From contig OZ251230.1 of assembly GCA_965240325.2 (NCBI GenBank), positions 2,762,667-2,826,666 on the forward strand: a DNA stretch of 64,000 nucleotides. Reading direction: 5' to 3'. This DNA comes from Rebecca billardiae RCC1528. Its lineage: Eukaryota; Protista; Haptophyta. A program made the translations under genes and the position numbers. This document shows positions 44,481-63,423 of this stretch, one piece after another. The notes beneath the pieces are model-generated. The model did not search any database and was not told where the DNA came from. It saw only the letters and a list, made by a program, of their open reading frames with translations. Numbering within the stretch: the first letter of the stretch is position 1; every line of letters begins with the position of its first letter.

Positions 44481-44885
44481 GGCGGGTGGCAGTTACGGCA
44501 AGCAGGCCGCATAGGGACGGTCGCGCAGGGCCCGCTCTCGAGCAAGCGCTCGCTGGCCGTCGAGCATATGTGCTGGGGGGCTCCGAACCGCCGGGTAGAG
44601 GTGAGAGCGGCGCGTGCTTTGCTTGGCTCTGGTCACCTACCGGCCGCGCGCGCGCTCGGCAGGGCCGGCGGGTGGCAGCTAAAGCAAATAGGCCGCATAG
44701 GGACGGTCGCGCAGGGCCCGCTCTCGAGCGAGCGCTCGCTAGCCGTCGAGCATATGTGTTGGGCGGCTCCGAACCGCCGGGTAGAGGTGAGAGCGGCGCG
44801 TGCTTGGCTTGGCTCTGGTCACCTACCGGCCGCGCGCGCGCTCGGCGGGGTCGGCGAGTGACAGTTCAGGCAAACAGGCCGCGTA
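44481..44885. repeat. Two-plus copies of a ~186-bp repeat leading into the main satellite
   Basis: GGCGGGTGGCAG..GGCCGCATAGGGACGGTCGCGCAGGGCCCG at ~44481 and ~44667. Confidence 0.9.
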
Positions 44886-44887
44886 GA

Positions 44888-47800
44888 GATTAATGCAAGG
44901 TGTCGGCCGCACTGATTTCAGGCGGGCTGGCTCCTCGCGCGCCGCACCGCCCGGTGGGTGCAGTCGACGGAGCCAGGGGCTAGGACCAACTTTCAGGGCT
45001 TGCGGGAGCGCACCGAGTGCACCTGCGTGCCCGGCGGCGGCGCGCGGCTGCATATTATATAGTGATTTTCGCGATTAATGCGAGGTCTCGGCCGCACTGA
45101 TTTCAGGCGAGCTGGCTCCTCGCGCGCCGCACCGCCCGGTGGGTGGAGTCGACGGAACCAGGGGTTAGGGCCAACTGTCAGGCCTTGTGGGAGCGCGCCG
45201 AGTGCACCCGCGCGCCCGGCGGCGGCGCGCGGCTGCCTAATATGCTGATTTTCGCGATTAATGCGAGGTCTCGGCCGCGCTGATTTCAGGCGAGCTGGCT
45301 CCTCTCGCGCCGCACCGCCCGGTGGGTGGAGTCGACGGAACCAGGGGTTAGGGCCAACTGTCAGGTCTTGTGGGAGCGCGCCGAGTGCACCCGCGCGCCC
45401 GGCGGCGGCGCGCGGCTGCATAATATATGCTGATTTTCGCGATTAATGCGAGGTCTCGGCCGCACTGATTTCAGGCGAGCTGGCTCCTCGCGCGCCGCAC
45501 CGCCCGGTGGGTGGAGTCGACGGAACCAGGGGCTAGGGCCAACTGTCAGGCCTTGTGGGAGCGCGCCGAGTGCACCCGCGCGCCCGGCGGCGGCGCGCGG
45601 CTGCATATTATCCTGATTTTCGCGATTAATGCGAGGTCTCGGCCGCGCTGATTTCAGGCGAGCTGGCTCCTCGCGCGCCGCACCGCCCGGTGGGTGGAGT
45701 CGACGGAGCCAGGGGCTAGGGCCAACTGTCAGGCCTTGTGGGAGCGCGCCGAGTGCACCCGCGCGCCCGGCGGCGGCGCGCGGCTGCATATTAGAGTGAT
45801 TTTCGCGATTTATGCGAGGTCTCGGCCGCGCTGATTTCAGGCGAGCTGGCTCCTCGCGCGCCGCACCGCCCGGTGGGTGGAGTCGACGGAACCAGGGGCT
45901 AGGGCCAACTGTCAGGCCTTGTGGGAGCGCGCCGAGTGCACCCGCGCGCCCGGCGGCGGCGCGCGGCTGCATATTAGAGTGATTTTCGCGATTAATGCGA
46001 GGTCTTGGCCGCGCTGATTTCAAGCGAGCTGGCTCCTCGCGCGCCGCACCGCCCGGTGCGTGGAGTCGACGGAACCAGGGGCTAGGGCCAACTGTCAGGC
46101 CTTGTGGGAGCGCGCCGAGTGCACCCGCGCGCCCGGCGGCGGCGCGCGGCTGCATATTAGAGTGATTTTCGCGATTAATGCGAGGTCTCGGCCGCGCTGA
46201 TTTCAGGCGAGCTGGCTCCTCGCGCGCCGCACCGCCCGGTGGGTGGAGTCGACGGAACCAGGGGTTAGGGCCAACTGTCAGGCCTTGTGGGAGCGCGCCG
46301 AGTGCACCCGCGCGCCCGGCGGCGGCGCGCGGCTGCCTAATATGCTGATTTTCGCGATTAATGCGAGGTCTCGGCCGCGCTGATTTCAGGCGAGCTGGCT
46401 CCTCGCGCGCCGCACCGCCCGGTGGGTGGAGTCGACGGAACCAGGGGTTAGGGCCAACTGTCAGGCCTTGTGGGAGCGCGCCGAGTGCACCTGCGCGCCC
46501 GGCGGCGGCGCGCGGCTGCATATTATCCTGATTTTCGCGATTAATGCGAGGTCTCGGCCGCGCTGATTTCAGGCGAGCTGGCTCCTCTCGCGCCGCACCG
46601 CCCGGTGGGTGGAGTCGACGGAACCAGGGGTTAGGGCCAACTGTCAGGTCTTGTGGGAGCGCGCCGAGTGCACCTGCGCGCCCGGCGGCGGCGCGCGGCT
46701 GCATATTATCCTGATTTTCGCGATTAATGCGAGGTCTCGGCCGCGCTGATTTCAGGCGAGCTGGCTCCTCTCGCGCCGCACCGCCCGGTGGGTGGAGTCG
46801 ACGGAACCAGGGGCTAGGGCCAACTGTCAGGCCTTGTGGGAGCGCGCCGAGTGCACCCGCGCGCCCGGCGGCGGCGCGCGGCTGCATATTTGAGTGATTT
46901 TCGCGATTTATGCGAGGTCTCGGCCGCGCTGATTTCAGGCGAGCTGGCTCCTCGCGCGCCGCACCGCCCGGTGGGTGGAGTCGACGGAGCCAGGGGTTAG
47001 GGCCAACTGTCAGGCCTTGTGGGAGCGCGCCGAGTGCACCCGCGCGCCCGGCGGCGGCGCGCGGCTGCCTAATATGCTGATTTTCGCGATTGATGCGAGG
47101 TCTCGGCCGCGCTGATTTCAGGCGAGCTGGCTCCTCGCGCGCCGCACCGCCCGGTGGGTGGAGTCGACGGAGCCAGGGGTTAGGGCCAACTGTCAGGCCT
47201 TGTGGGAGCGCGCCGAGTGCACCCGCGCGCCCGGCGGCGGCGCGCGGCTGCCTAATATGCTGATTTTCGCGATTAATGCGAGGTCTCGGCCGCGCTGATT
47301 TCAGGCGAGCTGGCTCCTCTCGCGCCGCACCGCCCGGTGGGTGGAGTCGACGGAACCAGGGGTTAGGGCCAACTGTCAGGTCTTGTGGGAGCGCGCCGAG
47401 TGCACCCGCGCGCCCGGCGGCGGCGCGCGGCTGCATAATATATGCTGATTTTCGCGATTAATGCGAGGTCTCGGCCGCACTGATTTCAGGCGAGCTGGCT
47501 CCTCGCGCGCCGCACCGCCCGGTGGGTGGAGTCGACGGAACCAGGGGCTAGGGCCAACTGTCAGGCCTTGTGGGAGCGCGCCGAGTGCACCCGCGCGCCC
47601 GGCGGCGGCGCGCGGCTGCATATTATCCTGATTTTCGCGATTAATGCGAGGTCTCGGCCGCGCTGATTTCAGGCGAGCTGGCTCCTCTCGCGCCGCACCG
47701 CCCGGTGGGTGGAGTCGACGGAACCAGGGGCTAGGGCCAACTGTCAGGCCTTGTGGGAGCGCGCCGATTGCACCCGCGCGCCCGGCGGCTGCGCGCGGCT

Positions 47801-49069
47801 GCCTATTATTGCGATTTTCGCGATTAATGCGAGAACTCGGCCGCGCTGATTTCAGGCGAGCTGGCTCCTCGCGCGCCGCACCGCCCGGTGGGTGGAGTCG
47901 ACGGAACCAGGGGTTAGGGCCAACTGTCAGGCCTTGTGGGAGCGCGCCGAGTGCACCCGCGCGCCCGGCGGCGGCGCGCGGCTGCATAATATATGCTGAT
48001 TTTCGCGATTAATGCGAGGTCTCGGCCGCGCTGATTTCAGGCGAGCTGGCTCCTCGCGCGCCGCACCGCCCGGTGGGTGGAGTCGACGGAGCCAGGGGTT
48101 AGGGCCAACTGTCAGGCCTTGTGGGAGCGCGCCGAGTGCACCCGCGCGCCCGGCGGCGGCGCGCGGCTGCCTAATATGCTGATTTTCGCGATTAATGCGA
48201 GGTCTCGGCCGCGCTGATTTCAGGCGAGCTGGCTCCTCTCGCGCCGCACCGCCCGGTGGGTGGAGTCGACGGAACCAGGGGCTAGGGCCAACTGTCAGGC
48301 CTTGTGGGAGCGCGCCGATTGCACCCGCGCGCCCGGCGGCTGCGCGCGGCTGCCTATTATTGCGATTTTCGCGATTAATGCGAGAACTCGGCCGCGCTGA
48401 TTTCAGGCGAGCTGGCTCCTCGCGCGCCGCACCGCCCGGTGGGTGGAGTCGACGGAACCAGGGGTTAGGGCCAACTGTCAGGCCTTGTGGGAGCGCGCCG
48501 AGTGCACCCGCGCGCCCGGCGGCGGCGCGCGGCTGCATAATATATGCTGATTTTCGCGATTAATGCGAGGTCTCGGCCGCGCTGATTTCAGGCGAGCTGG
48601 CTCCTCGCGCGCCGCACCGCCCGGTGGGTGGAGTCGACGGAGCCAGGGGTTAGGGCCAACTGTCAGGCCTTGTGGGAGCGCGCCGAGTGCACCCGCGCGC
48701 CCGGCGGCGGCGCGCGGCTGCCTAATATGCTGATTTTCGCGATTAATGCGAGGTCTCGGCCGCGCTGATTTCAGGCGAGCTGGCTCCTCTCGCGCCGCAC
48801 CGCCCGGTGGGTGGAGTCGACGGAACCAGGGGTTAGGGCCAACTGTCAGGTCTTGTGGGAGCGCGCCGAGTGCACCCGCGCGCCCGGCGGCGGCGCGCGG
48901 CTGCATAATATATGCTGATTTTCGCGATTAATGCGAGGTCTCGGCCGCACTGATTTCAGGCGAGCTGGCTCCTCGCGCGCCGCACCGCCCGGTGGGTGGA
49001 GTCGACGGAACCAGGGGCTAGGGCCAACTGTCAGGTCTTGTGGGAGCGCGCCGAGTGCACCCGCGCGCC
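44888..49069. repeat. Subtelomeric satellite, ~23 units of 183/185 bp
   Basis: GATTAATGCGAGGTCTCGGCCGC recurs every 183 or 185 bp. Each unit carries GGGGTTAGGG or GGGGCTAGGG. Confidence 0.98.
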
Positions 49070-49637
49070 TAGAAGTATGTTTTCTCGAGATTGACCGAGC
49101 CAAATTCTCTCAAAATTGGAGGGCCCTTAGCGCTTCCCATTTCCATGGCAGAGCCCAAGTCTCGTTGAAATCGGTTCGGTCAATGTACATTGTACATTCG
49201 GAAATGTACATTGTACATTTGGAATGTACTACATTGTACATTCGGATACATTTGATCATCAGATGTACTGTTGCAATGTACATTCGGATACATTCAGATG
49301 TACAATCAAGCAGTGTACAGAGTGTACAAAGTGTACAAATGTGTACATTCAAAATGTATACAATAGTGTACATTCATATGTACAATCAAGAAGTGTACAA
49401 AGTGTACAATATACCGTCAGAATCTACATTCGGATACATTCAGAGGAATGAGCAAAAACATACAGAGTGTACAGATATGTACAGTCAAAAACGTACTTTC
49501 GCGCCTGCAGTCTCAGAGCACAGCACCGGTCGATGCAGGCCCCGCCCCGCCCCCCCATCTGAAGCCTAGTCCTACTTGACTCTGGTGAGCAGCAACTGGT
49601 GAGAGCAGCTGCTCGTACATACGTCCTAGTTCTGTGC
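49070..49637. repeat. Telomere-junction cassette copy 0 (internally deleted, distally truncated)
   Basis: Starts TAGAAGTATG like copies 1 and 2. Lacks ~589 bp including the 18-mer array and ends at GTTCTGTGC. Confidence 0.9.
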
Positions 49638-49653
49638 TACTGGGTTAGAAGTA

Positions 49654-51695
49654 CACAGTAAAGAAATCGATTTTCGGCGTTACCGTAACCCGTCCGCACT
49701 TCCGCCCAGTGGGGATGCGGGGGAATTGTTTTCATGCCGCGTTCGCGGCACTTCGCGCCGCCACAGTGGAGAAAGATCGGGCCGAAGCCGTTTGAGCATG
49801 GTCGGTTGTGGGCACGCCCATTCGAATCGATGGCGCGCTCCGAGCGGCGGGCATGCGCGCATGTGTGCCGCGAGGGGGGCTGCGAGGCGTCGGCCGGCTT
49901 GCCAAGGCGGTTCCCCGGGGCGGCATCACCCTCGCCCGCCCCTCCTCGCCCACCCTCGCCCCACGGGCGGCCACACGTGACCTGTTAAGATGAGTTCACG
50001 GGAGCCGCACGGCACGCGCGCGGAGAGGCGAGGAAGTGGTGTTTCGCGGAAAAACGCTCTATAGCATTGTGCTCAACCCATGTGGTCACCCGCTCCACAA
50101 GTTTGTACGCCGCCAAACCGCACACAGCGGCCTGAGCAGCTCCCAGACTGAGTTTCGCTCTTGAAGCCTGTTTTTGGGCCAGATCTTGGTGTGGATGTAG
50201 CGCGGCGAGGAGGCGCCGGGCGCGCGCCCGAGCTGCGTGCTGGCACTCGCCATGACCCATAGGCATCGTCCGTCGCGAACGACCCGGCTCGCCTCGACCT
50301 CTCCGACCCGCCGGGCAGCCACGACCGAGCACGGCACGACAATGGCCAAACCGGGAGGCTTCTCAGACCGCGCGGGATGGGCATAGGCGCGAGAGAGGGC
50401 GCCCAGCGCGCTCTTGAGATGCACAGGAGCACGCACTGATGCGTATGGAACCATCCCATCACGATCGCCCCGACCTGGCGCGCCCTATCTGGCCCGTCAG
50501 GCTGCCCGCGCCGCCGCCGCCGCGCCACGCCGCCACCACGGGCGCCGCCGCATCACGGGCACATGGGTAAGTCTGTATTCAACAAATACAGAATTTCCGG
50601 TGCGGCCCTCTGTTGGGCGGCAAGGTCGATCTGGTCGACACCTGCCACGCGGCATGGGCCACGGCGCGGCGAGGTGGCGGCTGGCGCACCGCGGCGCGGG
50701 CGGGATGGCTCGAGGACACCACCGCCCCGCCTCCCACGCCGCGCCGTGCGCGTGCGCCGTGCTCTCGTCGCGTACCGAATTTCCTGCGGCGAGCGACAAC
50801 ACACAGCGCGACCATGCCATCGCGCGACGAGCTGCGTTCAGCTCGGCGATTTGTCGTATTTGTTGAATACATGCGGGTACGAATCCGACGCACGACGCCC
50901 TCGACGCACACGTCGAGAGCCACGCGCGCGGCGTGGACTGGCACGCGACGCGGAGATGGCGGGCGCGGTGCCGCGGGCGCGCGACTGGTCTAGAACAGCA
51001 CAATGAAGCGCGGGACGGCGCCGCGCGCGTGGGCTCGCTGCCGTCTCCTCGCAGTCGAATATTTCTGTGCACCCTCCTACCAGGTCAGTCGACCGACTTG
51101 CACGCGGCATGCGAGCACTGCGTGCGGGGAGGAGTGTGACATGGCAGGCTGTGGCGAGGTGGATGGCCGTGCAGGAGTATGCTAGGAAGGGCCGCTCCCG
51201 CGCTCGCGCGGTGCCTCGCGCACGCCTCGTCGAGGACGAGCGTGTTTGAATGGCTCCGGGGAGGCCTGAGACTTCGCTTGTTCACAGCAGCGCGCGACAG
51301 GTGCACACAACGGAGGTGACGACCAGGCACTCCGGCGAGGGCGGCTGTGCTGGCAGCAGACTGCATTCGGAGTAAGATGCGCCATCTTACGCGCCGCTTC
51401 GCCTCGCTGCATCGCCGCACTGAGCAGCAGGGCTCCACGCTCACGAATCTCACGAATGGCTCACCACGAGCTACGTGACCGGCCAGCCGCGTGCAACCCG
51501 GCGAGGCAGAGAGGGGCGGAGGGATGGGGAGGCTGGGTGGAATGTTGCAGTCCCATGCCCGGGGCACTCGTCAGGCGCCTGCGCGGCCACCGTAGCGTCT
51601 TCTGTGCGCTCGTGCGGCCCGCGAGAGAATTTCCCCGAAAATCGGCTCGTGTCGGACGGGTTACGGTAACGATAATCCCGTTTTTGTTCACTGTG
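49654..51695 (+). mobile_element. 2,042-bp non-autonomous CACAGT-ended DNA transposon, TSD TA
   Basis: 43-bp imperfect TIRs (CACAGT...CGTTACCGTAACCCGTCCG). TA at 49652-53 and 51696-97. The empty site GAAG-TA-TGTT is seen at ~49072 and ~54193. No credible ORF. Confidence 0.93.
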
Positions 51696-51700
51696 TATGT

Positions 51701-51814
51701 TTTCTCGAGATTGACCGAGCCAAATTCTCTCAAAATTGGAGGGCCCTTAGCCCTTCCCATTTCCATGGCAGAGCCCAAGTCTCGTTGAAATCAGTTCGGT
51801 CAATCTCGAGAAAT
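51701..51814. repeat. Inverted-repeat block with 18-bp arms TTTCTCGAGATTGACCGA (also 54201-54314; partial at 49081-49184)
   Basis: The arms are exact reverse complements around a ~78-bp spacer. Confidence 0.93.
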
Positions 51815-51852
51815 TCTCATTTTAGTACTGACGACCCTAACCACCACCCTAA

Positions 51853-52135
51853 CCCTAACCCTTACCTGCGCCCTAACCCTTACCTGCGCCCTAACCCTTA
51901 CCTGCGCCCTAACCCTTACCTGCGCCCTAACCCTTACCTGCGCCCTAACCCTTACCTGCGCCCTAACCCTTACCTGCGCCCTAACCCTTACCAGCGCCCT
52001 AACCCTTACCTGCGCCCTAACCCTTACCTGCGCCCTAACCCTTACCTGCGCCCTAACCCTTACCTGCGCCCTAACCCTTACCTGCGCCCTAACCCTTACC
52101 TGCGCCCTAACCCTTACCTGCGCCCTAACCCTTAC
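51853..52135. repeat. 18-bp telomere-like array (CCCTAACCCTTACCTGCG), ~15 units, inverted relative to the telomere
   Basis: Directly visible tandem repeat. Confidence 0.97.
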
Positions 52136-52145
52136 CCTCACCCTC

Positions 52146-52700
52146 ACATTGTACATTTGGAATGTACATTGTACATTTGGAATGTACATTGTACATTTGG
52201 AATGTACATTGTACATTCGGAAGTGTACATTGTACATTTGGAATGTACATTGTACATTCGGAAGTGTACATTGTACATTTGGAATGTAGTACATTGTACA
52301 TTCGGAAATGTACTTTGTACATTTGGAATGTACATTGTACATTCGGAAGTGTACATTGTACATTTGGAATGTAGTACATTGTACATTTGGAATGTACATT
52401 GTACATTCGGAAATGTACATTGTACATTTGGAATGTACTACATTGTACATTCGGATACATTTGATCATCATGCAGATGTACTGTTGCAATGTACATTCGG
52501 ATAAATTCAGATATGTACAATCAATCAGTGTACAGAGTGTACAAAGTGTACAAATGTGTACATTCAAAATGTATACAATAGTGTACATTCATATGTACAA
52601 TCAAGAAGTGTACAAAGTGTACAATATACCGTCACAATCTACATTCGGATACATTCAGAGGAATAAGCGAAAACATACAGAGTGTACAGATATGTACAGT
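52146..52700. repeat. AT-rich TGTACA(TT)-based repeat tract (also 60755-61305 and 49184-49485)
   Basis: TGTACATTTGGAATGTACAT units that decay distally. Confidence 0.93.
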
Positions 52701-53255
52701 CAAAAACGTACTTTCGCGCCTGCAGTCTCAGAGCACAGCACCGGTCGATGCAGGCCCCGCCCCGCCCCCCCATCTGAAGCCTAGTCCTACTTGACTCTGG
52801 TGAGCAGCAACTGGTGAGAGCAGCTGCTCGTACATACGTCCTAGTTCTGTGCGGGGAGTATCCCTCAATAATGTGGTTGGCATCAGCACCAGCCAGTCGA
52901 TCTCGAGTTGCAGCTGTGAGCTGTCAATCATCGATGACGAGACCTCGATGATGACAACGACAGTTGATAGGGCAAATCAAGCGCATGGCTGCTAAGCAGA
53001 GTGGCTGTGGCAGAATAGTATGCTGCGGTGCGGACGAGTGCAGCACCTGTCAAAGCTCAGCTCAAGCGCTGAGCACCTGTCAAAGCTGCCCCCGCCCCGC
53101 CCCCCCATCTTGCTCTTGGCTCAACCTGCACAGGGGGCGCGCACAGAGCAGCACCCATTGCATGCCACAGCTCAAGCAAGCAGAGGGGACGATTGCTCTC
53201 CAGCCTTGTCAACGTGCGCAAGCGGATCCTTGACCGCCCATCTCAGAATGATTTG

Positions 53256-54179
53256 CCCAGCTCGGCAGAGTCGGCCGGCCCAGAGCCTCCTGGGCCGCCA
53301 GACACGCCGCCCCAGCCGGCCGCCACCGGGTCGAAACGGCCGCGGCTGGTAACCTCACTCAGGGTAGATGTCTCTTTGGGCCTAACCTCACCACTGCGCG
53401 CCCAGTGCGCAGCCGGCGCGCAGCCTGGCGCCAGCCCTCCCAGCCCAGCTGGAGCCGGCCTGGGAGGCTCTGGGCAGCCCAGCTCGGCCCACTCGGCCGG
53501 CCCAGAGCCTCCTGGGCCGCCAAACACGCCGCCCCAGCCGGCCCCCACTGGGCCGAAACGGCCGCGGCTGGTAACCTCACCCAGGGTAGATGTCTCTTTG
53601 GGCCTAACCTCACCACTGCGCGCCCAGTGCGCAGCCGGCGCGCAGCCTGGCGCCAGCCCTCCCAGCCCAGCTGGAGCCGGCCTGGGAGGCTCTGGGCAGC
53701 CCAGCTCGGCCCACTCGGCCGGCCCAGAGCCTCCTGGGCCGCCAAACACGCCGCCCCAGCCGGCCCCCACTGGGCCGAAACGGCCGCGGCTGGTAACCTC
53801 ACCCAGGGTAGATGTCTCTTTGGGCCTAACCTCACCACTGCGCGCCCAGTGCGCAGCCGGCGCGCAGCCTGGCGCCAGCCCTCCCAGCCCAGCTGGAGCC
53901 GGCCTGGGAGGCTCTGGGCAGCCCAGCTCGGCCCACTCGGCCGGCCCAGAGCCTCCTGGGCCGCCAAACACGCCGCCCCAGCCGGCCCCCACTGGGCCGA
54001 AACGGCCGCGGCTGGTAACCTCACCCAGGGTAGATGTCTCTTTGGGCCTAACCTCACCACTGCGCGCCCAGTGCGCAGCCGGTGCGCAGCCTGGCGCCAG
54101 CCCTCCCAGCCCAGCTGGAGCCGGCCTGGGAGGCTCTGGGCAGCCCAGCTCGGCCCACTCGGCCGGCCCAGAGCCTCCT
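53256..54179. repeat. 222-bp tandem array, ~4.1 units
   Basis: CAGAGCCTCC at 53281, 53503, 53725, 53947 and 54169. Confidence 0.96.
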
Positions 54180-54624
54180 AGGTTTAGGGTTAGAAGTATG
54201 TTTTCTCGAGATTGACCGAGCCAAATTCTCTCAAAATTGGAGGGCCCTTAGCCCTTCCCATTTCCATGGCAGAGCCCAAGTCTCGTTGAAATCAGTTCGG
54301 TCAATCTCGAGAAATTCTCCACAGTAAAGAAATCAATTTTCGGCGTTACCGTAACCCGTCCGGCGGCCCGCCCAGTGGGCGGAGCGATGTCCTGTTTTTT
54401 CACCCTTCGGCGCCGCCGCTCGCGGAAGACCAGTGGACAGCTTCGGGCCGAGCGTCGTTCAAGCGACGAGCCGAGCGCCCCGCCCGTCGACCCGATCGCC
54501 AGGTATCGTGGCCGTACCGCGCGGCGTACGCGGCGCGCTGCGGCCGCGCGCGATGATGACCCATGCCACAGTGCCCCAACCCCCCGCGTAGGCACCACGG
54601 AGCCCGTCACCAACCTCTCCTTCG

Positions 54625-55617
54625 ATGGTCGAGCGGTACAACGGTGCGCGCGCCGCGAGACTCGACCCGCGCGCGCTCGCGCGCGCGCGCGCGGCGAGGC
54701 GGCGGGCGGATGCGAGATATCTTTCTATAGCATTTCGCCCAACTCACCCACGAACCACGCCCGCATGTTTGTACGCCGTCAATCCGCACACAGCGTCCCC
54801 TGCAGCCCGTGGACTGATTTTCGCTCTTGCAACTGACACGCCGCCGCGCCCCGCGGCGCGCACGGCGCGCGCAGGAGAGGAGGGCCGGAAGCGACCCAGG
54901 GCGCCGACCGCCGCGAAGAAGGTGGTGAAGAAGGCCAAGCTGGGCAGCTCGCCGCCGGCGACCGGCCCCCCGCGCCTCGCGCCGATGCCGATCACCATGG
55001 AGATCGACCTCGCGCCGTGGGTCTCGGACTTCCTCTACATGATGTGGAAGGCGGCGGCGTCGACGTGCCGCGCGGATGGGCGGCACTTCAAGGAGTACCG
55101 GGCGGACCCGATGCCGTGGCAGGTGTTCAAGCACCTGATGACGTGGCTGCTCGAGGGCACGGAGTCGTACATCATGGCGGACCTCGACCCGCGCATCTCG
55201 TACTCGGAGACGGCGGCGCGGCGCACGCACACGGTGCGGCTCACGGACATGCAGCACCTCTCGCGCCGGCTTGGCTTCGGCCAGCTGAAGGCGGACGCGT
55301 CGGTGGCGACGGCGCGGCAGAGCGCGAAGGGCAACCTGAACGCGGTGATCGAGGTGGAGGCGGTGCACGTCACGCGGCGCAACCCGGCGACGTGGCGCAA
55401 GCGCGAGTCGGTGACCGTGCGAGTCTGGCTGGCCGCGGTCAACGCGACGGGGCGCGTGTCGCTGCCGGAGGCGCGGTACACGGCGGCGGAGGAGGCGGCC
55501 ATCACGACGTACATGCGCTCGCTCACGGTGCAGGGCAAGGCGGCGGGCAAGCCGATCAACCCGCAGATGCACCGCGCGCTCCGCCAGGTGGCCAAGGCGC
55601 AGCGCCGCTCGCAGTGA
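54625..55617 (+). CDS. Transposon ORF1 of unknown function (basic NLS-like stretch + ~200-aa globular region); probable intron 54644-54874
   Basis: Strong GC3 bias from 54875 and the basic stretch RKRPR..KKVVKKAK. Donor G|GTGCGC, CTGAC branch-like site and acceptor GCGCAG are phase-compatible. Confidence 0.7.
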   Translation: MVERYNGARAARLDPRALARARAARRRADARYLSIAFRPTHPRTTPACLYAVNPHTASPAARGLIFALATDTPPRPAARTARAGEEGRKRPRAPTAAKKVVKKAKLGSSPPATGPPRLAPMPITMEIDLAPWVSDFLYMMWKAAASTCRADGRHFKEYRADPMPWQVFKHLMTWLLEGTESYIMADLDPRISYSETAARRTHTVRLTDMQHLSRRLGFGQLKADASVATARQSAKGNLNAVIEVEAVHVTRRNPATWRKRESVTVRVWLAAVNATGRVSLPEARYTAAEEAAITTYMRSLTVQGKAAGKPINPQMHRALRQVAKAQRRSQ

Positions 55618-56096
55618 GCGGCAGCGCGCCGCGCGCGCCCGGCGCGCCGCGCGCGCCGCGCGCGCCGCGCGTGCCGCACGCGCCGAGCGAGGGCGGCGGC
55701 GCGGGCGGCGGCGCGGGCGGCGATGGCGGCGGCGGCGGCGGCGGCGGCGGCGCTGGCGGCGGCGGTGGCGCTCACGGCGGCCGAGGCGGCGGCGGCGCTG
55801 GCGGCGGCGCTGGCGGCGGTGCTGATGACGGTGGTGGCGGCGGCGGCGGCGCTCGCACTGCCGCGCCCGAGCTCGCGCGCGGCGCGGCTGACACGGGCGC
55901 GGCTCACGTCGGCGCGGCTGACGACGAGCACGATGCTGGCGGCGCAGACGGCGCGGCCGGCGCAGGCGGCGCAGGCGCGCGCGGCGCGGTCGGAGCGGCA
56001 GCGGCCACAGCGCCTCCGCCGCGGGCGCTCGCGGCAGCCGAGGACGACGGCTCGCCGCTCGGCCCGCTACTCGTTGTCCGGCTCAGCTTGAGCGGG

Positions 56097-59000
56097 ATGC
56101 GGGGTTGGACCAAGCGGGCGCCGCCGTCGCTCCAGCGGCGAGATCATCTCGTGCGCGCTCGTGCGCAGCTGCAGGCGACTCGCGCGGCCGCGGGCGGCGA
56201 GCGCGCGGCGGTGGCGGCGCCCTTCCCGGCGCCGCTCGCCGCCGCTCGCGGCGGCGCGCTCGTGCCGCTGGCCGATGCCGCGCGCGCGGGCTCGCCCGCG
56301 CCGCAGCCCGCGGCGCGCCGGACGCCGCGCGCGCCGCGCGCGCAGCCCGCCGCGCCGCCGCGCGTGCTCGTCGTGTCGACGATTGGGTCGGTGCCGTCGC
56401 CCGCCACGCCGGACGGCGCGGCGGCGGGTGCAGCGACAAGAGCCGCTGCCGCCTCCGCGTCACGCACCGTGCGCACCACCGCGCTCGCGCCGATCGTCCC
56501 GCACATCACGCGCCGCGCTCTCGCCGACGCGACCAACGCGGCGGCGAGCAGCGACGCCTGGCTGCAGCGGGAGGCGCAGTCGACGGTCGAACTCAACGAG
56601 GAGAACCGGCGGCTGCACGCGCGCAACTACGAGCTCGCGCGGACCGAGCAGGCGTCGCTCCGCCTGCTCGCGCGCACCCGCGCCGAGAAGACCGATCTCC
56701 TCGCCCAGAACGACGAGCTGCGCGCCGAAGTCGAGCAGCAGCGCGAGCGCGCGGACGCGCGCGCGGAGGCGGCAAAGAAGTCGCAGCGCAAGCTCGCCGC
56801 CGCTCGCGCCGCCGCTCGCGCCGCTCGCACCGGGCTGCTGCGTCGTGAGGGGCACGCGCATAACGACGGTCTCCGCATCGCGCAGGTCGAGGAGGAAAGC
56901 CTCGAGCAGGCGGAGCAGATCGACGAGCTCAACGCGCAGATCCTCGAGCAGTCGGAGGAGATCGATGCGCTCAACGCGCGGCGCCTCGAGCGCGAGGAGG
57001 AGTTCGCCGAGCTCGAGGCGAATTTTTTGAGGTTCGAGGCCGTCGGCGAGGAGCACGTGGGCGCGCTCGAGCGCGAGATCGATTGGCAGGGCGCGCAGCT
57101 CGCGGCGCTCGAGCGGCGCGACAAGGAGCGCAAGGAGCAGCGCAGCTCGGCCGCGGTCAAAGCTGCGGCGCGAGAGCGCGAGGCGGCCGCGCTGGCGCGC
57201 GCGGATGCCGAGGCCGCGAGCGCCAAGGTGGCCGCGCTCAAGAAGGAGAGGACGCGGCTGGCGGACGCGAAGCGCGCGAGCGAGGCTCGCCGCGCTGCGA
57301 GCAGTGCGCGCTTGTGCTTACTCAACCCCGCCCTGCGCCAGCGCGGCCGTCCGACCGCCGCCGGGCGCGACGATGCGAGCAGCGGCAGCGGCTGCGACGG
57401 CGGCGACTCGGACAGCAGCAACGACGGCGACGGCCCCGGCGGCGGCTTGAACAAAGCAGCGGAACGCGTGAGGCGGCACCGCGCGCGGGCCGACATCCGC
57501 GCCGTGAGCGATCGCTTCGGCGGCGGCGGCGACTCGGCGCTCGACTCGCTCCTCTTCGCCAACGGCGGCCTCGCCGCGCGCCTCAAGGGCCAGCCGCACT
57601 TTGACAAGTTCGTCCACGGCATCCGGCGGGAGCACTCGCGGAAGGTGGGGGAGACGCTGTTCGCGCTCGACAGGACGACGGACCTCTTCATCCACGCCAA
57701 CCTGTCGACGCGCTCTGTGCACCTGACTCGCGAGGTGATGGGCTTCGAGTACTCGCTCACCACGGGCGAGCGCAAGCAGCGCGCCGTCGACGGCGTGCCG
57801 GTGCCGCTCCCGCTGTCGTGCTACATCATCACCAAGGAGGTGAGACGGCGGCTCGGCGCGCTCGGCGTGCGCCTCGCGGACGGCACCGAGGGCAAGGCGG
57901 CCGTGATGGACTGCACGCTCGCGCTGTGCCGCCTGCTCGTGGAGGCGCGCGCGCTCTCGGGCTCGAACCCGCTCGACGACGTCGGCGGCCCCGTCTTCGC
58001 GCTCAAGTTCGACTCGGCGGAGATGGGCCGATCGATCCACATGATGCTCGCCAGCATCTCGTACCCGATGGTCGGCGTGGGCGCGCAGTCGGAGGGCCAG
58101 CACAAGACGATCGGCGTCGCGGTGGGCAAGGACGAGATGATCGGCACGGTGCTCGACGCCAACCGCGAGGAGGTGGAGCGCCTCTGCCTCCGTCGGCGCA
58201 TCCGCCTGCCCAAGTGCGCGCGCAAGAAGCTGTCCGAGGTCAGCTCGCGCGACAAAGCGGCCGGGCTCGCGTTCGAGAAGCTGATGTGCGACCTGTGCGC
58301 CAAGGTGGAGGAGGGCGGCTGCAGCGGCGGCTGCTGCGAGGAGTGGGACGAGCTGGTGGCGCAGATGATCGCGGTCGCCGACGACGCGGCGAAGCGCAAG
58401 CTGCTCGGGCTCACGACGCACACCGCCAAGTTCGGCTCCATCGACTACGTCGACGCAGTCTCCGACCTCGTCACGCCGGGCTACGAGCCGACGCCGAGGA
58501 ACATCGTGAGCATGTACCACTCGGCGCACGTGCCGTTCCCGGGCGATCCGGAGGGCCCGGTCAAGTGCCCGTGCTGCTCGTACTGGGCGCCCAGCCACGC
58601 GCAGGCGCGCAAGGACCGCGCGGCGGACGACGCGCGCTTCGCCAAGGACGCGCTCGCGCGGCAGCAGCGCGGGTCGTCGCACGCTGGCCAGCTCTACGCG
58701 CCGCAGCTGCCGATCCCGATGACCAACGTGATCACGCCGATCATGCACCTCCTCGAGAACGCGTTCAGCTACGCGCACACGCACGCGATGTGGAACTACC
58801 CGGCGACTGTCATCTCGGGGCTCAGCGACTTCACCGAGGCGAAGAGGACGCGCCTGCTCAACTGCGTGCGGTACGACGCCGTCGAGATCCTGCAGACGAT
58901 GGGCATCCGCGCTGCGAAGCTGCCGCCGCGGCGCGGAGACGACGTGAGCGAGCCGAAGTTCCTCTTCACCGAGGTGCGCACGCTCATCAGCTCGCTGCCC

Positions 59001-59870
59001 TTCATCTTCTACGTCGTGGCGCTGTGCGCGCACGTCCACGACCTCGTGCGCCGCGAGCGCGCGGCCGCCGGCGCCGCAGCGCCGCCGCCGCCGCCGCCGC
59101 CTGCGGCAGCGCCGAGGCCCGCTGCGCGGCCGGAGCCGTACCAGGCCCTGATGGACGCGCTCGCGGACGAGTCGGACTCGGAGGACGAGGACGACGCGCC
59201 GGCCGCGCGCGCAAGGTCGGACGCGCAGGCAGCGCTCGAGATGGAGGACGACGACTTCACGCAGGCGTTGAAGGTGTGCCGCATGCTCCAGGCGTACGGC
59301 GAGTTCGAGATGGCCGTCTCGTCCACCGACTACCGCCACGACGACCGTGCTGAGCGCGAGGCCCACGCTGCTCGCGTCGCCGAGGTCGGCCGCGAGTTCC
59401 TCAAGCGGCGCGGCCAGGCGCTGCCGGCGAGTGAGCACGCGTGCTCGGTGTACGATGTGGTGATCCTGCACAAGCTGCCGGCGGACCTGCGCCGGTGGGG
59501 GCACATCATCGTGCACGGGCGCGAGGACGGCCAGGAGAAGAAGAACCAGGAGGCCAAGGCCATCTCTCGCCGGTGCGTGCGGCGCCTGACCAAGTTCGTC
59601 TCGTACGTGAAGAAGAACGGCACGCGCGTGGACGTGCAGCGCACGATGTCGCTGCAGATCGCCGAGCGGGTCGCGCTCAAGGAGCAGGTGCAGCTGAGGA
59701 TGGGCACGTACGTCAAGCACCTCGCCGTGCACGCCAGCGGCCACTGGCGGCAGGACCAGCTCGACCAAGGCTACTCGGTCAAGCGCGCGCGCTCGCAGTT
59801 CACGAGCGAGCTCGAGGAGCAGATCGCCAAGCGCGGCAAGCACGACATGGACGCGTGGATGAAGCGTTGA
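56097..59870 (+). CDS. Transposase: long coiled coil followed by a RAG1/Transib-like DDE core (start uncertain; may be spliced to ORF1)
   Basis: FALKFD (Asp codon 58011), IAVADDAAKRKLLGL (58380), PIMHLLEN (His 58746) and YDVVILHKLPADLRRWGHI..EDGQEKKN (Glu 59535) parallel the RAG1 D600, D708, H795 and E962 regions. The frame is uninterrupted. Confidence 0.8.
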   Translation: MRGWTKRAPPSLQRRDHLVRARAQLQATRAAAGGERAAVAAPFPAPLAAARGGALVPLADAARAGSPAPQPAARRTPRAPRAQPAAPPRVLVVSTIGSVPSPATPDGAAAGAATRAAAASASRTVRTTALAPIVPHITRRALADATNAAASSDAWLQREAQSTVELNEENRRLHARNYELARTEQASLRLLARTRAEKTDLLAQNDELRAEVEQQRERADARAEAAKKSQRKLAAARAAARAARTGLLRREGHAHNDGLRIAQVEEESLEQAEQIDELNAQILEQSEEIDALNARRLEREEEFAELEANFLRFEAVGEEHVGALEREIDWQGAQLAALERRDKERKEQRSSAAVKAAAREREAAALARADAEAASAKVAALKKERTRLADAKRASEARRAASSARLCLLNPALRQRGRPTAAGRDDASSGSGCDGGDSDSSNDGDGPGGGLNKAAERVRRHRARADIRAVSDRFGGGGDSALDSLLFANGGLAARLKGQPHFDKFVHGIRREHSRKVGETLFALDRTTDLFIHANLSTRSVHLTREVMGFEYSLTTGERKQRAVDGVPVPLPLSCYIITKEVRRRLGALGVRLADGTEGKAAVMDCTLALCRLLVEARALSGSNPLDDVGGPVFALKFDSAEMGRSIHMMLASISYPMVGVGAQSEGQHKTIGVAVGKDEMIGTVLDANREEVERLCLRRRIRLPKCARKKLSEVSSRDKAAGLAFEKLMCDLCAKVEEGGCSGGCCEEWDELVAQMIAVADDAAKRKLLGLTTHTAKFGSIDYVDAVSDLVTPGYEPTPRNIVSMYHSAHVPFPGDPEGPVKCPCCSYWAPSHAQARKDRAADDARFAKDALARQQRGSSHAGQLYAPQLPIPMTNVITPIMHLLENAFSYAHTHAMWNYPATVISGLSDFTEAKRTRLLNCVRYDAVEILQTMGIRAAKLPPRRGDDVSEPKFLFTEVRTLISSLPFIFYVVALCAHVHDLVRRERAAAGAAAPPPPPPPAAAPRPAARPEPYQALMDALADESDSEDEDDAPAARARSDAQAALEMEDDDFTQALKVCRMLQAYGEFEMAVSSTDYRHDDRAEREAHAARVAEVGREFLKRRGQALPASEHACSVYDVVILHKLPADLRRWGHIIVHGREDGQEKKNQEAKAISRRCVRRLTKFVSYVKKNGTRVDVQRTMSLQIAERVALKEQVQLRMGTYVKHLAVHASGHWRQDQLDQGYSVKRARSQFTSELEEQIAKRGKHDMDAWMKR

Positions 59871-60317
59871 GCGATCGGTGAGCGCGCCGCCGCGCCACCG
59901 GCCGCAGGACGCGCGCGCGCGCGCGCGCACGTCCTCATGGCCGCGCCGCCCCACCCGCGCCTGCGCACCTACCTTACACGCTTTGCCGTACAGGACGAGC
60001 ACGGGCCAGCAGTGCGCCGCTCGACCAGTGACGCGTCCGACTGCCGGCCGACGGCTCGGCGCGCGCGCGCGCGCGCGCGATCGCGCGAGCAGCTGGTCGA
60101 CCTGATGCCGGCGCTGATGGGCAGCGCCAGCTCGCTCGCACTCAGGCCCCTGACGGTGCCCATAGTGCGCGCTCGTCCGCGGCATAGGGGCCGTCAAAGG
60201 GGCACTTCGCAGAAAGCTGTAATAAAACCTGTGAATTTCGGACGGTTTGCTGTAACGATTTAATTGTTTTTGTTCACTGTGTCATTTTAGTACTGGCGAC
60301 CCTAACCACCACCCTAA

Positions 60318-60745
60318 CCCTAACCCTTACCTGCGCCCTAACCCTTACCTGCGCCCTAACCCTTACCTGCGCCCTAACCCTTACCTGCGCCCTAACCCTT
60401 ACCAGCGCCCTAACCCTTACCTGCGCCCTAACCCTTACCTGCGCCCTAACCCTTACCTGCGCCCTAACCCTTACCTGCGCCCTAACCCTTACCTGCGCCC
60501 TAACCCTTACCTGCGCCCTAACCCTTACCTGCGCCCTAACCCTTACCTGCGCCCTAACCCTTACCTGCGCCCTAACCCTTACCTGCGCCCTAACCCTTAC
60601 CAGCGCCCTAACCCTTACCTGCGCCCTAACCCTTACCTGCGCCCTAACCCTTACCTGCGCCCTAACCCTTACCTGCGCCCTAACCCTTACCTGCGCCCTA
60701 ACCCTTACCTGCGCCCTAACCCTTACCTGCGCCCTAACCCTTACC
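60318..60745. repeat. 18-bp telomere-like array, ~23 units
   Basis: Same unit as 51853-52135, but the array is 144 bp longer. Confidence 0.97.
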
Positions 60746-61860
60746 CTCACCCTCACATTGTACATTTGGAATGTACATTGTACATTTGGAATGTACATTG
60801 TACATTTGGAATGTACATTGTACATTCGGAAGTGTACATTGTACATTTGGAATGTACATTGTACATTCGGAAGTGTACATTGTACATTTGGAATGTAGTA
60901 CATTGTACATTCGGAAATGTACTTTGTACATTTGGAATGTACATTGTACATTCGGAAGTGTACATTGTACATTTGGAATGTAGTACATTGTACATTTGGA
61001 ATGTACATTGTACATTCGGAAATGTACATTGTACATTTGGAATGTACTACATTGTACATTCGGATACATTTGATCATCAGATGTACTGTTGCAATGTACA
61101 TTCGGATAAATTCAGATATGTACAATCAATCAGTGTACAGAGTGTACAAAGTGTACAAATGTGTACATTCAAAATGTATACAATAGTGTACATTCATATG
61201 TACAATCAAGAAGTGTACAAAGTGTACAATATACCGTCACAATCTACATTCGGATACATTCAGAGGAATAAGCGAAAACATACAGAGTGTACAGATATGT
61301 ACAGTCAAAAACGTACTTTCGCGCCTGCAGTCTCAGAGCACAGCACCGGTCGATGCAGGCCCCGCCCCGCCCCCCCATCTGAAGCCTAGTCCTACTTGAC
61401 TCTGGTGAGCAGCAACTGGTGAGAGCAGCTGCTCGTACATACGTCCTAGTTCTGTGCGGGGAGTATCCCTCAATAATGTGGTTGGCATCAGCACCAGTCA
61501 GTCGATCTCGAGTTGCAGCTGTGAGCTGTCAATCATCGATGACGAGACCTCGATGATGACAACGACAGTTGATAGGGCAAATCAAGCGCATGGCTGCTAA
61601 GCAGAGTGGCTGTGGCAGAATAGTATGCTGCGGTGCGGACGAGTGCAGCACCTGTCAAAGCTCAGCTCAAGCGCTGAGCACCTGTCAAAGCTGCCCCCGC
61701 CCCGCCCCCCCATCTTGCTCTTGGCTCAACCTGCACAGGGGGCGCGCACAGAGCAGCACCCATTGCATGCCACAGCTCAAGCAAGCAGAGGGGACGATTG
61801 CTCTCCAGCCTTGTCAACGTGCGCAAGCGGATCCTTGACCGCCCATCTCAGAATGATTTG

Positions 61861-62624
61861 CCCAGCTCGGCAGAGTCGGCCGGCCCAGAGCCTCCTGGGC
61901 CGCCAGACACGCCGCCCCAGCCGGCCGCCACCGGGTCGAAACGGCCGCGGCTGGTAACCTCACTCAGGGTAGATGTCTCTTTGGGCCTAACCTCACCACT
62001 GCGCGCCCAGTGCGCAGCCGGCGCGCAGCCTGGCGCCAGCCCTCCCAGCCCAGCTGGAGCCGGCCTGGGAGGCTCTGGGCAGCCCAGCTCGGCCCACTCG
62101 GCCGGCCCAGAGCCTCCTGGGCCGCCAAACACGCCGCCCCAGCCGGCCCCCACTGGGCCGAAACGGCCGCGGCTGGTAACCTCACCCAGGGTAGATGTCT
62201 CTTTGGGCCTAACCTCACCACTGCGCGCCCAGTGCGCAGCCGGCGCGCAGCCTGGCGCCAGCCCTCCCAGCCCAGCTGGAGCCGGCCTGGGAGGCTCTGG
62301 GCAGCCCAGCTCGGCCCACTCGGCCGGCCCAGAGCCTCCTGGGCCGCCAAACACGCCGCCCCAGCCGGCCCCCACTGGGCCGAAACGGCCGCGGCTGGTA
62401 ACCTCACCCAGGGTAGATGTCTCTTTGGGCCTAACCTCACCACTGCGCGCCCAGTGCGCAGCCGGCGCGCAGCCTGGCGCCAGCCCTCCCAGCCCAGCTG
62501 GAGCCGGCCTGGGAGGCTCTGGGCAGCCCAGCTCGGCCCACTCGGCCGGCCCAGAGCCTCCTGGGCCGCCAAACACGCCGCCCCAGCCGGCCCCCACTGG
62601 GCCGAAACGGCCGCGGCTGGTAAC
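61861..62624. repeat. 222-bp tandem array, ~3.4 units, truncated by the telomere
   Basis: Same unit as 53256-54179. Breaks at CTGGTAAC|TAGG. Confidence 0.96.
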
Positions 62625-62783
62625 TAGGTTAGGGTTAGGTTAGGTTAGGGTTAGGGTTAGGGTTAGGGTTAGGGTTAGGGTTAGGGTTAGGGTTAGGGTT
62701 AGGGTTAGGGTTAGGGTTAGGGGTTAGGGTTAGGGTTAGGGTTAGGGTTAGGGTTAGGGTTAGGGTTAGGGTTAGGGTTAGGG

Positions 62784-62824
<41 letters not shown>

Positions 62825-63423
62825 GGTTAGGGTTAGGGTTAGGGGTTAGGGTTAGGGTTAGGGGTTAGGGGTTAGGGTTAGGGTTAGGGGTTAGGGTTAG
62901 GGTTAGGTTAGGGTTAGGGTTAGGGTTAGGGTTAGGGTTAGGGTTAGGGTTAGGGTTAGGGTTAGGGGTTAGGGTTAGGGTTAGGGTTAGGGTTAGGGTT
63001 AGGGTTAGGGTTAGGGGTTAGGGTTAGGGTTAGGGTTAGGGTTAGGGTTAGGGTTAGGGTTAGGGTTAGGGTTAGGGTTAGGGTTAGGGTTAGGGTTAGG
63101 GTTAGGGTTAGGGTTAGGGTTAGGGTTAGGGTTAGGGTTAGGGTTAGGGTTAGGGTTAGGGTTAGGGTTAGGGTTAGGGTTAGGGTTAGGGTTAGGGTTA
63201 GGGTTAGGGTTAGGGTTAGGGTTAGGGTTAGGGTTAGGGTTAGGGTTAGGGTTAGGGTTAGGGTTAGGGTTAGGGTTAGGGTTAGGGTTAGGGTTAGGGT
63301 TAGGGTTAGGGTTAGGGTTAGGGTTAGGGTTAGGGTTAGGGTTAGGGTTAGGGTTAGGGTTAGGGTTAGGGTTAGGGTTAGGGTTAGGGTTAGGGTTAGG
63401 GTTAGGGTTAGGGTTAGGGTTAG

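Follow-up and report, generated by a model that had tools for sequence, protein, structure and literature searches.

In a 64,000-nt stretch of the haptophyte Rebecca billardiae RCC1528 genome (contig OZ251230.1; hereafter the window, in whose coordinates all positions are given), we identified a 6-kb element at 54320-60281 that we interpret, with a probability of about 0.8, as a cut-and-paste DDE transposon that is autonomous and structurally intact and belongs to an as yet unprofiled lineage of the CMCT assemblage, i.e., CMC (EnSpm/CACTA, Mirage, and Chapaev) plus Transib. On this reading, the element adds a new branch to an assemblage that is already known and does not amount to a new kind of transposon. 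By "unprofiled" we mean that no Pfam or PDB sequence profile matches it; of the named recent lineages, the comparison covered ESTA (by its described TSD) and Plavaka (by its described termini and by Pfam). The original prediction, made from the sequence alone, had suggested that this algal element might mark a little-described lineage of the CMC/Transib-RAG superclade, and this suggestion is supported by the predicted fold of the transposase, the lack of a Pfam match, and the small number of relatives.

The element starts with CACAGTAAAGAAA and finishes with TTTGTTCACTGTG, i.e., with CACAGT... at the 5′ end and ...CACTGTG at the 3′ end. An ungapped alignment of its 43-bp termini gave 29 identical positions out of 43, with the matches clustering at positions 1-13 and 25-43. 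This agreement in two blocks indicates that the terminal inverted repeat (TIR) is imperfect and bipartite; of the 43-bp TIRs described previously, the arms at both ends are present, but the repeat between them is not continuous. For a 13-nt end motif, 0.07 occurrences would be expected in the window and five were counted, namely at both ends of the 6-kb element, at both ends of a 2042-bp element nearby, and at one internal site. The ends, the target-site duplications (TSDs), and the related sites are as follows.

54318-54319, no strand: left TSD copy, TC; a single TC in the empty paralogous site
54320-54362, + strand: 5′ TIR, CACAGTA plus AAGAAA (positions 1-13), variable at 14-24, inner block CGTTACCGTAACCCGTCCG (25-43)
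60239-60281, - strand: 3′ TIR, reverse complement CACAGTG AACAAA ..., inner block CGTTACAGCAAACCGTCCG from position 25
60282-60283, no strand: right TSD copy, TC, from the comparison of filled and empty sites
51811-51830, no strand: empty paralogous target of the 6-kb element, GAGAAATTCTCATTTTAGTACT, with one TC, in the neighboring repeat unit 2.5 kb upstream
49654-51695, + strand: non-autonomous relative of 2042 bp with the same 5′ and 3′ end types; TSD TA at 49652-49653 and 51696-51697
54187-54210, no strand: empty paralogous site of the 2042-bp element, GGGTTAGAAGTA/TGTTTTCTCGAG, with one TA

The filled site reads ...GAGAAATTCTC, the element, and then TCATTTTAGTACT, with TC flanking it on both sides. 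Because the empty paralogous site holds a single TC, the 2-bp duplication is proven, which bears out the TSD and the empty site claimed in the original prediction. The left flank of 124 bp (repeat family D16) is 100% identical to the empty paralogue, and the filled and empty repeat units share 99.8% identity over 2167 bp, being only one substitution and one indel apart. The insertion is therefore recent. For the 2042-bp element, there is a second empty copy at 49068-49090 with a shorter left match. Three 2-bp duplications were thus found: TC and TA in the window, both with empty sites, and AG on a metagenome contig (L001) that carries a related element.

Among the seven termini available, CACAGT(G) was found at positions 1-7 in all seven and CGTTRC at positions 25-30 in six. 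The second block lies equally distant from both termini (position 25; 17-bp spacer). In the two elements of the window, the 5′ and 3′ ends are consistently unlike at positions 7-24, which represents an asymmetry of sequence with equal spacing. A 12/23 asymmetry of the ends was considered and rejected, since the inner block begins at position 25 on either end.

The long open reading frame (ORF) at 55017-59870 is open for 1617 codons, as had been stated for an uninterrupted ORF, but coding in that frame is confined to 56097-59870. The GC content at third codon positions (GC3) of this frame is 0.88-0.97 only from ~56100, and the bias stops at the stop codon; the first ATG, at 56097, gives a protein of 1257 aa (ORF2). 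At ~54900-55600, on the other hand, a GC3 of 0.97-0.99 lies in another frame, that of ORF1. This switch of frame indicates that the element holds two genes. The upstream gene is an addition to the earlier reading, in which the whole long ORF had been taken as coding.

54625-55617, + strand: ORF1, accessory gene; true start uncertain, GC3 coding from ~54900, conserved domain at residues 112-323
56097-59870, + strand: ORF2, transposase of 1257 aa; GC3, and 39% identity to the relative P0002 over the full length
56580-57446, + strand: coiled-coil-like charged helical region at the N terminus of ORF2, from the sequence; similar regions in the relatives P0002 and P0016
57858-59540, + strand: RAG1-like catalytic core, model residues 138-698, from the model alignment to mouse RAG1 and from conservation
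54724-54829, + strand: subterminal block of ~107 bp, ~400 bp inside the 5′ end, 76% shared with 50058-50163 of the 2042-bp element

The best relative of the transposase, P0002 (955 aa, 39% identity), aligns over its full length with no frameshifts. It is encoded on L001, a 5.3-kb contig that represents a complete element, with CACAGTGATCCGAAAA at each end, AG on both flanks, and the same layout of ORF1 and ORF2. The N-terminal coiled coil noted earlier holds up as a coiled-coil-like segment shared with relatives; it gave marginal coiled-coil Pfam matches and probably mediates oligomerization. Outside the ~107-bp block, the interiors of the 6-kb and 2042-bp elements are unrelated, and the block itself is a candidate cis element, promoter, or leader.

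These observations bear on whether the copy is a dead or domesticated relic, immobile, with genes that are intact by chance in GC-rich DNA or that serve the host. Long ORFs are common at 75% GC, and the window holds many overlapping ones; moreover, fusion proteins of Pavlovales sp. CCMP2436 that lack one or both catalytic Asp are transcribed, hinting at domestication or at non-autonomous derivatives. However, the GC3 bias of 0.9-0.97 is specific to one frame and does not continue past the stop codon, the alignment with P0002 is full-length and free of frameshifts, both end repeats are intact, the repeat unit that received the insertion and its empty paralogue are 99.8% identical, and a second, non-autonomous family member is inserted nearby. 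We therefore regard a relic as quite improbable; judging from its sequence, the transposon has probably been active recently.

ORF1 carries a basic stretch resembling a nuclear localization signal ahead of its conserved domain, and its homologue upstream of the L001 transposase shares 44% identity (E value, 2e-51). Further relatives are found among Pavlovales proteins and transcripts. Its conservation beside the transposase in two distant elements, together with the preceding basic stretch, suggests that ORF1 is a nuclear accessory factor, which might bind the ends or regulate transposition. The model of the ORF1 domain (211 residues, mixed alpha/beta) had a predicted local distance difference test score (pLDDT) of 75 and a predicted template modeling score (pTM) of 0.74. 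It had no significant match in the Protein Data Bank (PDB) by Foldseek, a best Z score of 4.5 and no propeller match in a Foldseek-independent scan of 48,161 chains, and no match in the ESM Atlas (TM score, ≤0.36); ORF1 had no match in Pfam either. A RAG2-like identity was rejected, since the model is not a kelch propeller. Splicing of ORF1 to ORF2 just before the CxxC motif, as in Pavlovales transcripts, was also considered and dropped as speculation, because the genomic copy in Pavlovales (L003) is a contiguous fusion; CAG/GT at 55585-55589 and an in-frame AG at 58552-58553 do exist, but such sites are frequent.

The predicted fold of the transposase is one of the features that it shares with the CMCT assemblage. 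An AlphaFold2 model of long-ORF residues 811-1617 (model residue number equals long-ORF codon minus 810) was built with 22 aligned sequences and reached a pTM of 0.65 and a mean pLDDT of 69, with most core blocks at 75-97 and poor values in a low-complexity linker and in the 693-704 segment. In a Foldseek search of the PDB, the top 43 matches were all RAG1 chains (best E value, 8.7e-5; probability, 1.0), followed by BbRAGL and HzTransib and then, much weaker, Hermes. With VIA-align, RAG1 gave Z scores of 13-14.3 over 370-413 residues at ~4 Å, with model residues 138-698 corresponding to mouse RAG1 532-963. The scores were 13.8 for BbRAGL and 10.1 for HzTransib, against 6.0 for the best unrelated chain and 4.9 for the P element transposase. 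The comparison suggested in the original prediction, of an AlphaFold model of the core with RAG1 and HzTransib by Foldseek, thus came out with RAG1 at the top. Among the Swiss-Prot models of the AlphaFold Database (AFDB), the top eight were likewise all RAG1, and the best matches among the AFDB fold clusters (E values, 4e-9 to 1e-5) were uncharacterized proteins from diverse eukaryotes. The closest shapes in the ESM Atlas were unnamed eukaryotic clusters (TM score, ~0.5); clusters labeled DUF1280, Transposase_21, or Plavaka scored 0.33-0.55, with Transposase_21 at 0.33-0.43. By language-model features of the core, eight of the ten best named matches had RAG1 RNase H, ZnC2, or ZnH2 domains, which we take as a lead only. 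To our knowledge, no structure of a CMC transposase has been solved, so the PDB match shows a CMC/Transib-type architecture and cannot separate Transib from CMC. The earlier label "RAG1/Transib-like" accordingly stands at the level of the fold; it does not extend to sequence similarity or to a choice of Transib over CMC.

Alternatively, the deep sister group of the element may be specifically Transib/RAG and not CMC, which would make it a non-animal RAG relative with bipartite ends resembling recombination signal sequences (RSSs). RAG1 and BbRAGL are its best solved matches, the named language-model neighbors of its core are mostly RAG1-domain clusters and none carries Transposase_21, its ends are bipartite, and its terminal heptamer CACAGTG equals the RSS consensus (PMC1131882). 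The TSD, however, is 2 bp and not 5, the inner block is not an A-rich nonamer and shows no 12/23 asymmetry, and the RAG1 Pfam domains match none of 22 family members. HzTransib scores below RAG1 (Z, 10 versus 14), Atlas neighbors labeled Transposase_21 or Plavaka are as near as RAG1, and ORF1 is not RAG2-like. Taken together, we find a Transib/RAG sister position doubtful. Its fuller form, a deep sister of Transib/RAG outside animals with a 2-bp stagger and a structurally novel partner, ORF1, in place of RAG2, seems unlikely to us as well; if it were true, the two-component, bipartite-signal design would either predate the capture of RAG2 or have arisen independently.

The motifs LKFD, AVADD, CPCC, MHLLEN, and EDGQEKKN follow one another in that order and are conserved in relatives. 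The candidate residues are given here by long-ORF codon.

D999 (LKFD), D1123 (AVADD), C1184/C1187, H1222
H1244-E1247-N1248 (MHLLEN), E1503/E1507 (REDGQE)

In model numbering, the first candidate catalytic residue, D189 (LKFD), lies in a predicted strand, and the second, D313 (second D of AVADD), just past one. D313, not D312, is the conserved residue, being kept in all six reliably aligned relatives in a hand-checked alignment. C377, H412 (HxGQL), E437, and N438 are invariant in the family and C374 and H434 nearly so; in the model, C374, C377, H412, and H434 probably form a zinc module. E693 and E697 (REDGQE), like the second D, are kept in every non-degenerate member. Since E962 of RAG1 aligns to model residue 696±1 (model 696-698 corresponding to RAG1 962-964), E697 is favored as the catalytic Glu, with E693 one helical turn off. 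Catalysis by D189, D313, and E693/E697 is thus a candidate assignment drawn from the model. The C-terminal block may resemble RAG1 around H942-E962, a likeness that is statistically unconfirmed and was not used as evidence. A second Cys-rich stretch, C-x2-C ... C-x3-C-C at 58281-58350 (model 279-300), just before the second catalytic Asp, is kept in the relatives P0002 and P0004 but not in a distant TARA member, and possibly represents another metal site.

The family is rare. When 1.84 billion representative proteins were searched exhaustively with HMMER (E ≤ 1e-3), 24 relatives of the transposase were recovered, from marine metagenomes (ENA, TARA, JGI, and Logan), MMETSP transcripts, and Pavlovales sp. 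CCMP2436; fungi, nematodes, and mosses contributed none. Searching with a profile built from the AT-richer members added one fragment only. No relatives were found by word-indexed protein searches with the single sequence or the family alignment, in which low-complexity words probably swamped the candidates, by pattern scans of JGI metagenome contigs and viral contigs, or by tblastn against phages, which was an uninformative search. Pfam, at E values up to 10, matched none of 22 family members, including with its Transposase_21/EnSpm, Plavaka, and RAG1 domain models, and the transposase as a single sequence had no match in a PDB sequence search.

The rarity of relatives also bears on whether the element belongs to a named CMCT lineage with 2-bp TSDs (Mirage, PlavakaA, ESTA, or Lanisha) that profile libraries leave uncovered. 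Kojima 2025 lists such lineages, namely Mirage, PlavakaA, and ESTA, the last recognized through its HHpred similarity to RAG1 (PMC12730594), and the nearest Atlas and AFDB folds, which include unnamed streptophyte, cnidarian, and rotifer clusters besides DUF1280-labeled ones, are possibly such lineages. However, ESTA is fungal, TET-associated, and TA-specific (PMC12730594), whereas the present family duplicates TC, TA, and AG in haptophytes and marine protists. The ends of PlavakaA (TGT..ACA) and PlavakaB (CATCA..TGATG) differ from CACAGTG (PMC12730594), and the Plavaka Pfam model has no match. Lanisha is a moss lineage, and none of the 24 relatives is fungal, nematode, or moss. From the comparison with ESTA and Plavaka and the origin of the 24 relatives, we judge membership in one of these named lineages to be improbable, and an unprofiled CMCT lineage remains our preferred reading.

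Several points weigh against this reading. The transposase has no sequence-level link to any described family by Pfam or PDB profiles; a profile of the whole family and one of the 75-column C-terminal block both gave chance matches only when run against the PDB. The model is weakest exactly near E693-E704 (pLDDT, <50), no more than three sequences align reliably over the first catalytic D, and the window copy is alone in having the CMCT motif H(3-4)H (H686-x3-H690), which is not kept in relatives. Finally, a single full-length copy is visible in the window.

Other relatives show further variations. A third lineage (L004) terminates in ...CACTGTG. Read inward from this 3′ end (L004:1868-1916), its sequence is CACAGTG, 12 bp, and AAAAAAATC, a heptamer-12-nonamer arrangement on a single terminus that may be due to chance; AAAAAAATC is the nonamer stated as the Transib consensus (PMC1131882). 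In Pavlovales sp. CCMP2436 (L003:8410-10476; P0005, P0007, P0012, P0026, and P0027), the ORF1 domain is fused to the C-terminal part of the transposase. The first catalytic Asp is missing from these fusions, and in the MMETSP transcripts neither Asp is present; the genome holds several diverged fusion copies, and three transcripts are recorded. They could be non-autonomous derivatives, domesticated genes, or analogues of alternative En/Spm transcripts. A JGI metagenome contig (sample 3300038657; L005:1095-2155) carries an internally deleted relative in which ORF2 485-772 is joined to 1131-1206.

The window has a GC content of ~73-75%, matching that of the pavlovophyte Diacronema lutheri (73.25%; PMC8379373), which makes a pavlovophyte host likely. 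At the right end of the window, repeat units follow one another head to tail and include telomere-like repeats of the CCCTAA-variant type, and the setting looks subtelomeric. The units, at 49075-62900, are ~2.5 kb long and 97-100% identical, and contain 18-bp telomere-variant arrays of the CCCTAACCCTTACCTGCG type (51835-52260 and 60300-60850) as well as 222-bp repeats (53255-54220 and 61860-62600). A satellite of 183/185-bp units at 44870-49215 comprises ~23 copies with 95-99% identity, interspersed with a diverged variant unit. An 18-bp inverted repeat, TTTCTCGAGATTGACCGA ... TCGGTCAATCTCGAGAAA, is found at 51696-51819 (also at 54197-54319 and 49076-49185), and both transposon insertions (n = 2) sit a few bases outside opposite arms of it. 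Either a preference for targets flanked by palindromes or just the local repeat structure may account for this position.

We propose that ORF2 (~1250 aa) would act through an N-terminal coiled coil, probably oligomerizing, and a core predicted to consist of a pre-RNase H region, an RNase H-like domain (D189 and D313), a Cys/His zinc module, a helical insertion, and a C-terminal helix (E693/E697). The transposase would bind the bipartite ends, made up of a CACAGTG-type heptamer, ~17 variable bp, and a CGTTRC-type inner block, cut at the CAC boundary, and insert the element by 2-bp staggered strand transfer. ORF1 would be a family-specific accessory protein with no recognizable fold. Zinc binding, hairpin chemistry, oligomerization, and any role of ORF1 are what we infer.

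With this element, the assemblage from which the V(D)J recombinase arose gains a compact two-gene transposon that is apparently active and comes from an algal group little studied so far. The family escapes all existing profiles and will therefore be overlooked when repeats are annotated in the genomes of haptophytes and marine protists. The intact autonomous copy, with a matching non-autonomous element nearby, is also a candidate tool for haptophyte genetics. Should the element belong with Transib/RAG, the host range of that lineage would become wider, and the element would offer a comparison for the evolution of end recognition, stagger (2 versus 5 bp), and partner protein on the same scaffold.

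The predicted fold is shared with RAG1, BbRAGL, and Transib (4WWX, 6CG0, 6B40, and 6PQR, among others) over ~375 residues, beginning in the pre-RNase H region and continuing across the RNase H, ZnC2, and ZnH2 regions as far as the E962 helix, with the same D...D...CxxC...H...E order. In RAG1, however, the His pair lies near the catalytic E, whereas the two conserved His of the element closely follow CxxC, and the N terminus comprises NBD, Chapa, and RING rather than a coiled coil. The partner of RAG-like and ProtoRAG transposases is a RAG2 kelch protein, which ORF1 does not resemble. As to the ends, bipartite organization and the CACAGTG heptamer are common to the RSS (PMC1131882) and the element. 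Transib has a 5-bp TSD and a ~38-bp TIR consisting of a CACAATG heptamer, a 23-bp (or 12-bp) spacer, and an A-rich nonamer (PMC1131882); the element has CGTTRC at position 25 on both ends. Its 2-bp TSD and different second block mean that membership in Transib proper is not supported.

With CMC, the element has in common the 2- to 4-bp TSD and the CAC... termini. En/Spm makes two gene products per element, and here, too, there are two genes. On the other hand, the Transposase_21/tnp2 Pfam model matches no member, and the EnSpm core motifs (DxPA and GPL..FE) are absent. The CMCT clade as a whole is described by CA..TG termini, TSDs of 2-5 bp, and C(2)C and His motifs (PMC12730594, Kojima 2025), and the element is alike in its CA..TG ends, 2-bp TSD, fold, and most motifs: D, D, C-x2-C, and E are kept and H412/H434 are invariant or nearly so, with H-x3-H in the window copy only. 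Because CMCT already spans such ends and TSD lengths, the combination of CACAGT ends with a 2-bp TSD, which the original prediction had regarded as an unusual mix, is less anomalous than was held. Like ESTA, Plavaka, and Lanisha, the element is a divergent CMCT-type transposon seen mainly by remote homology to RAG1 or EnSpm.

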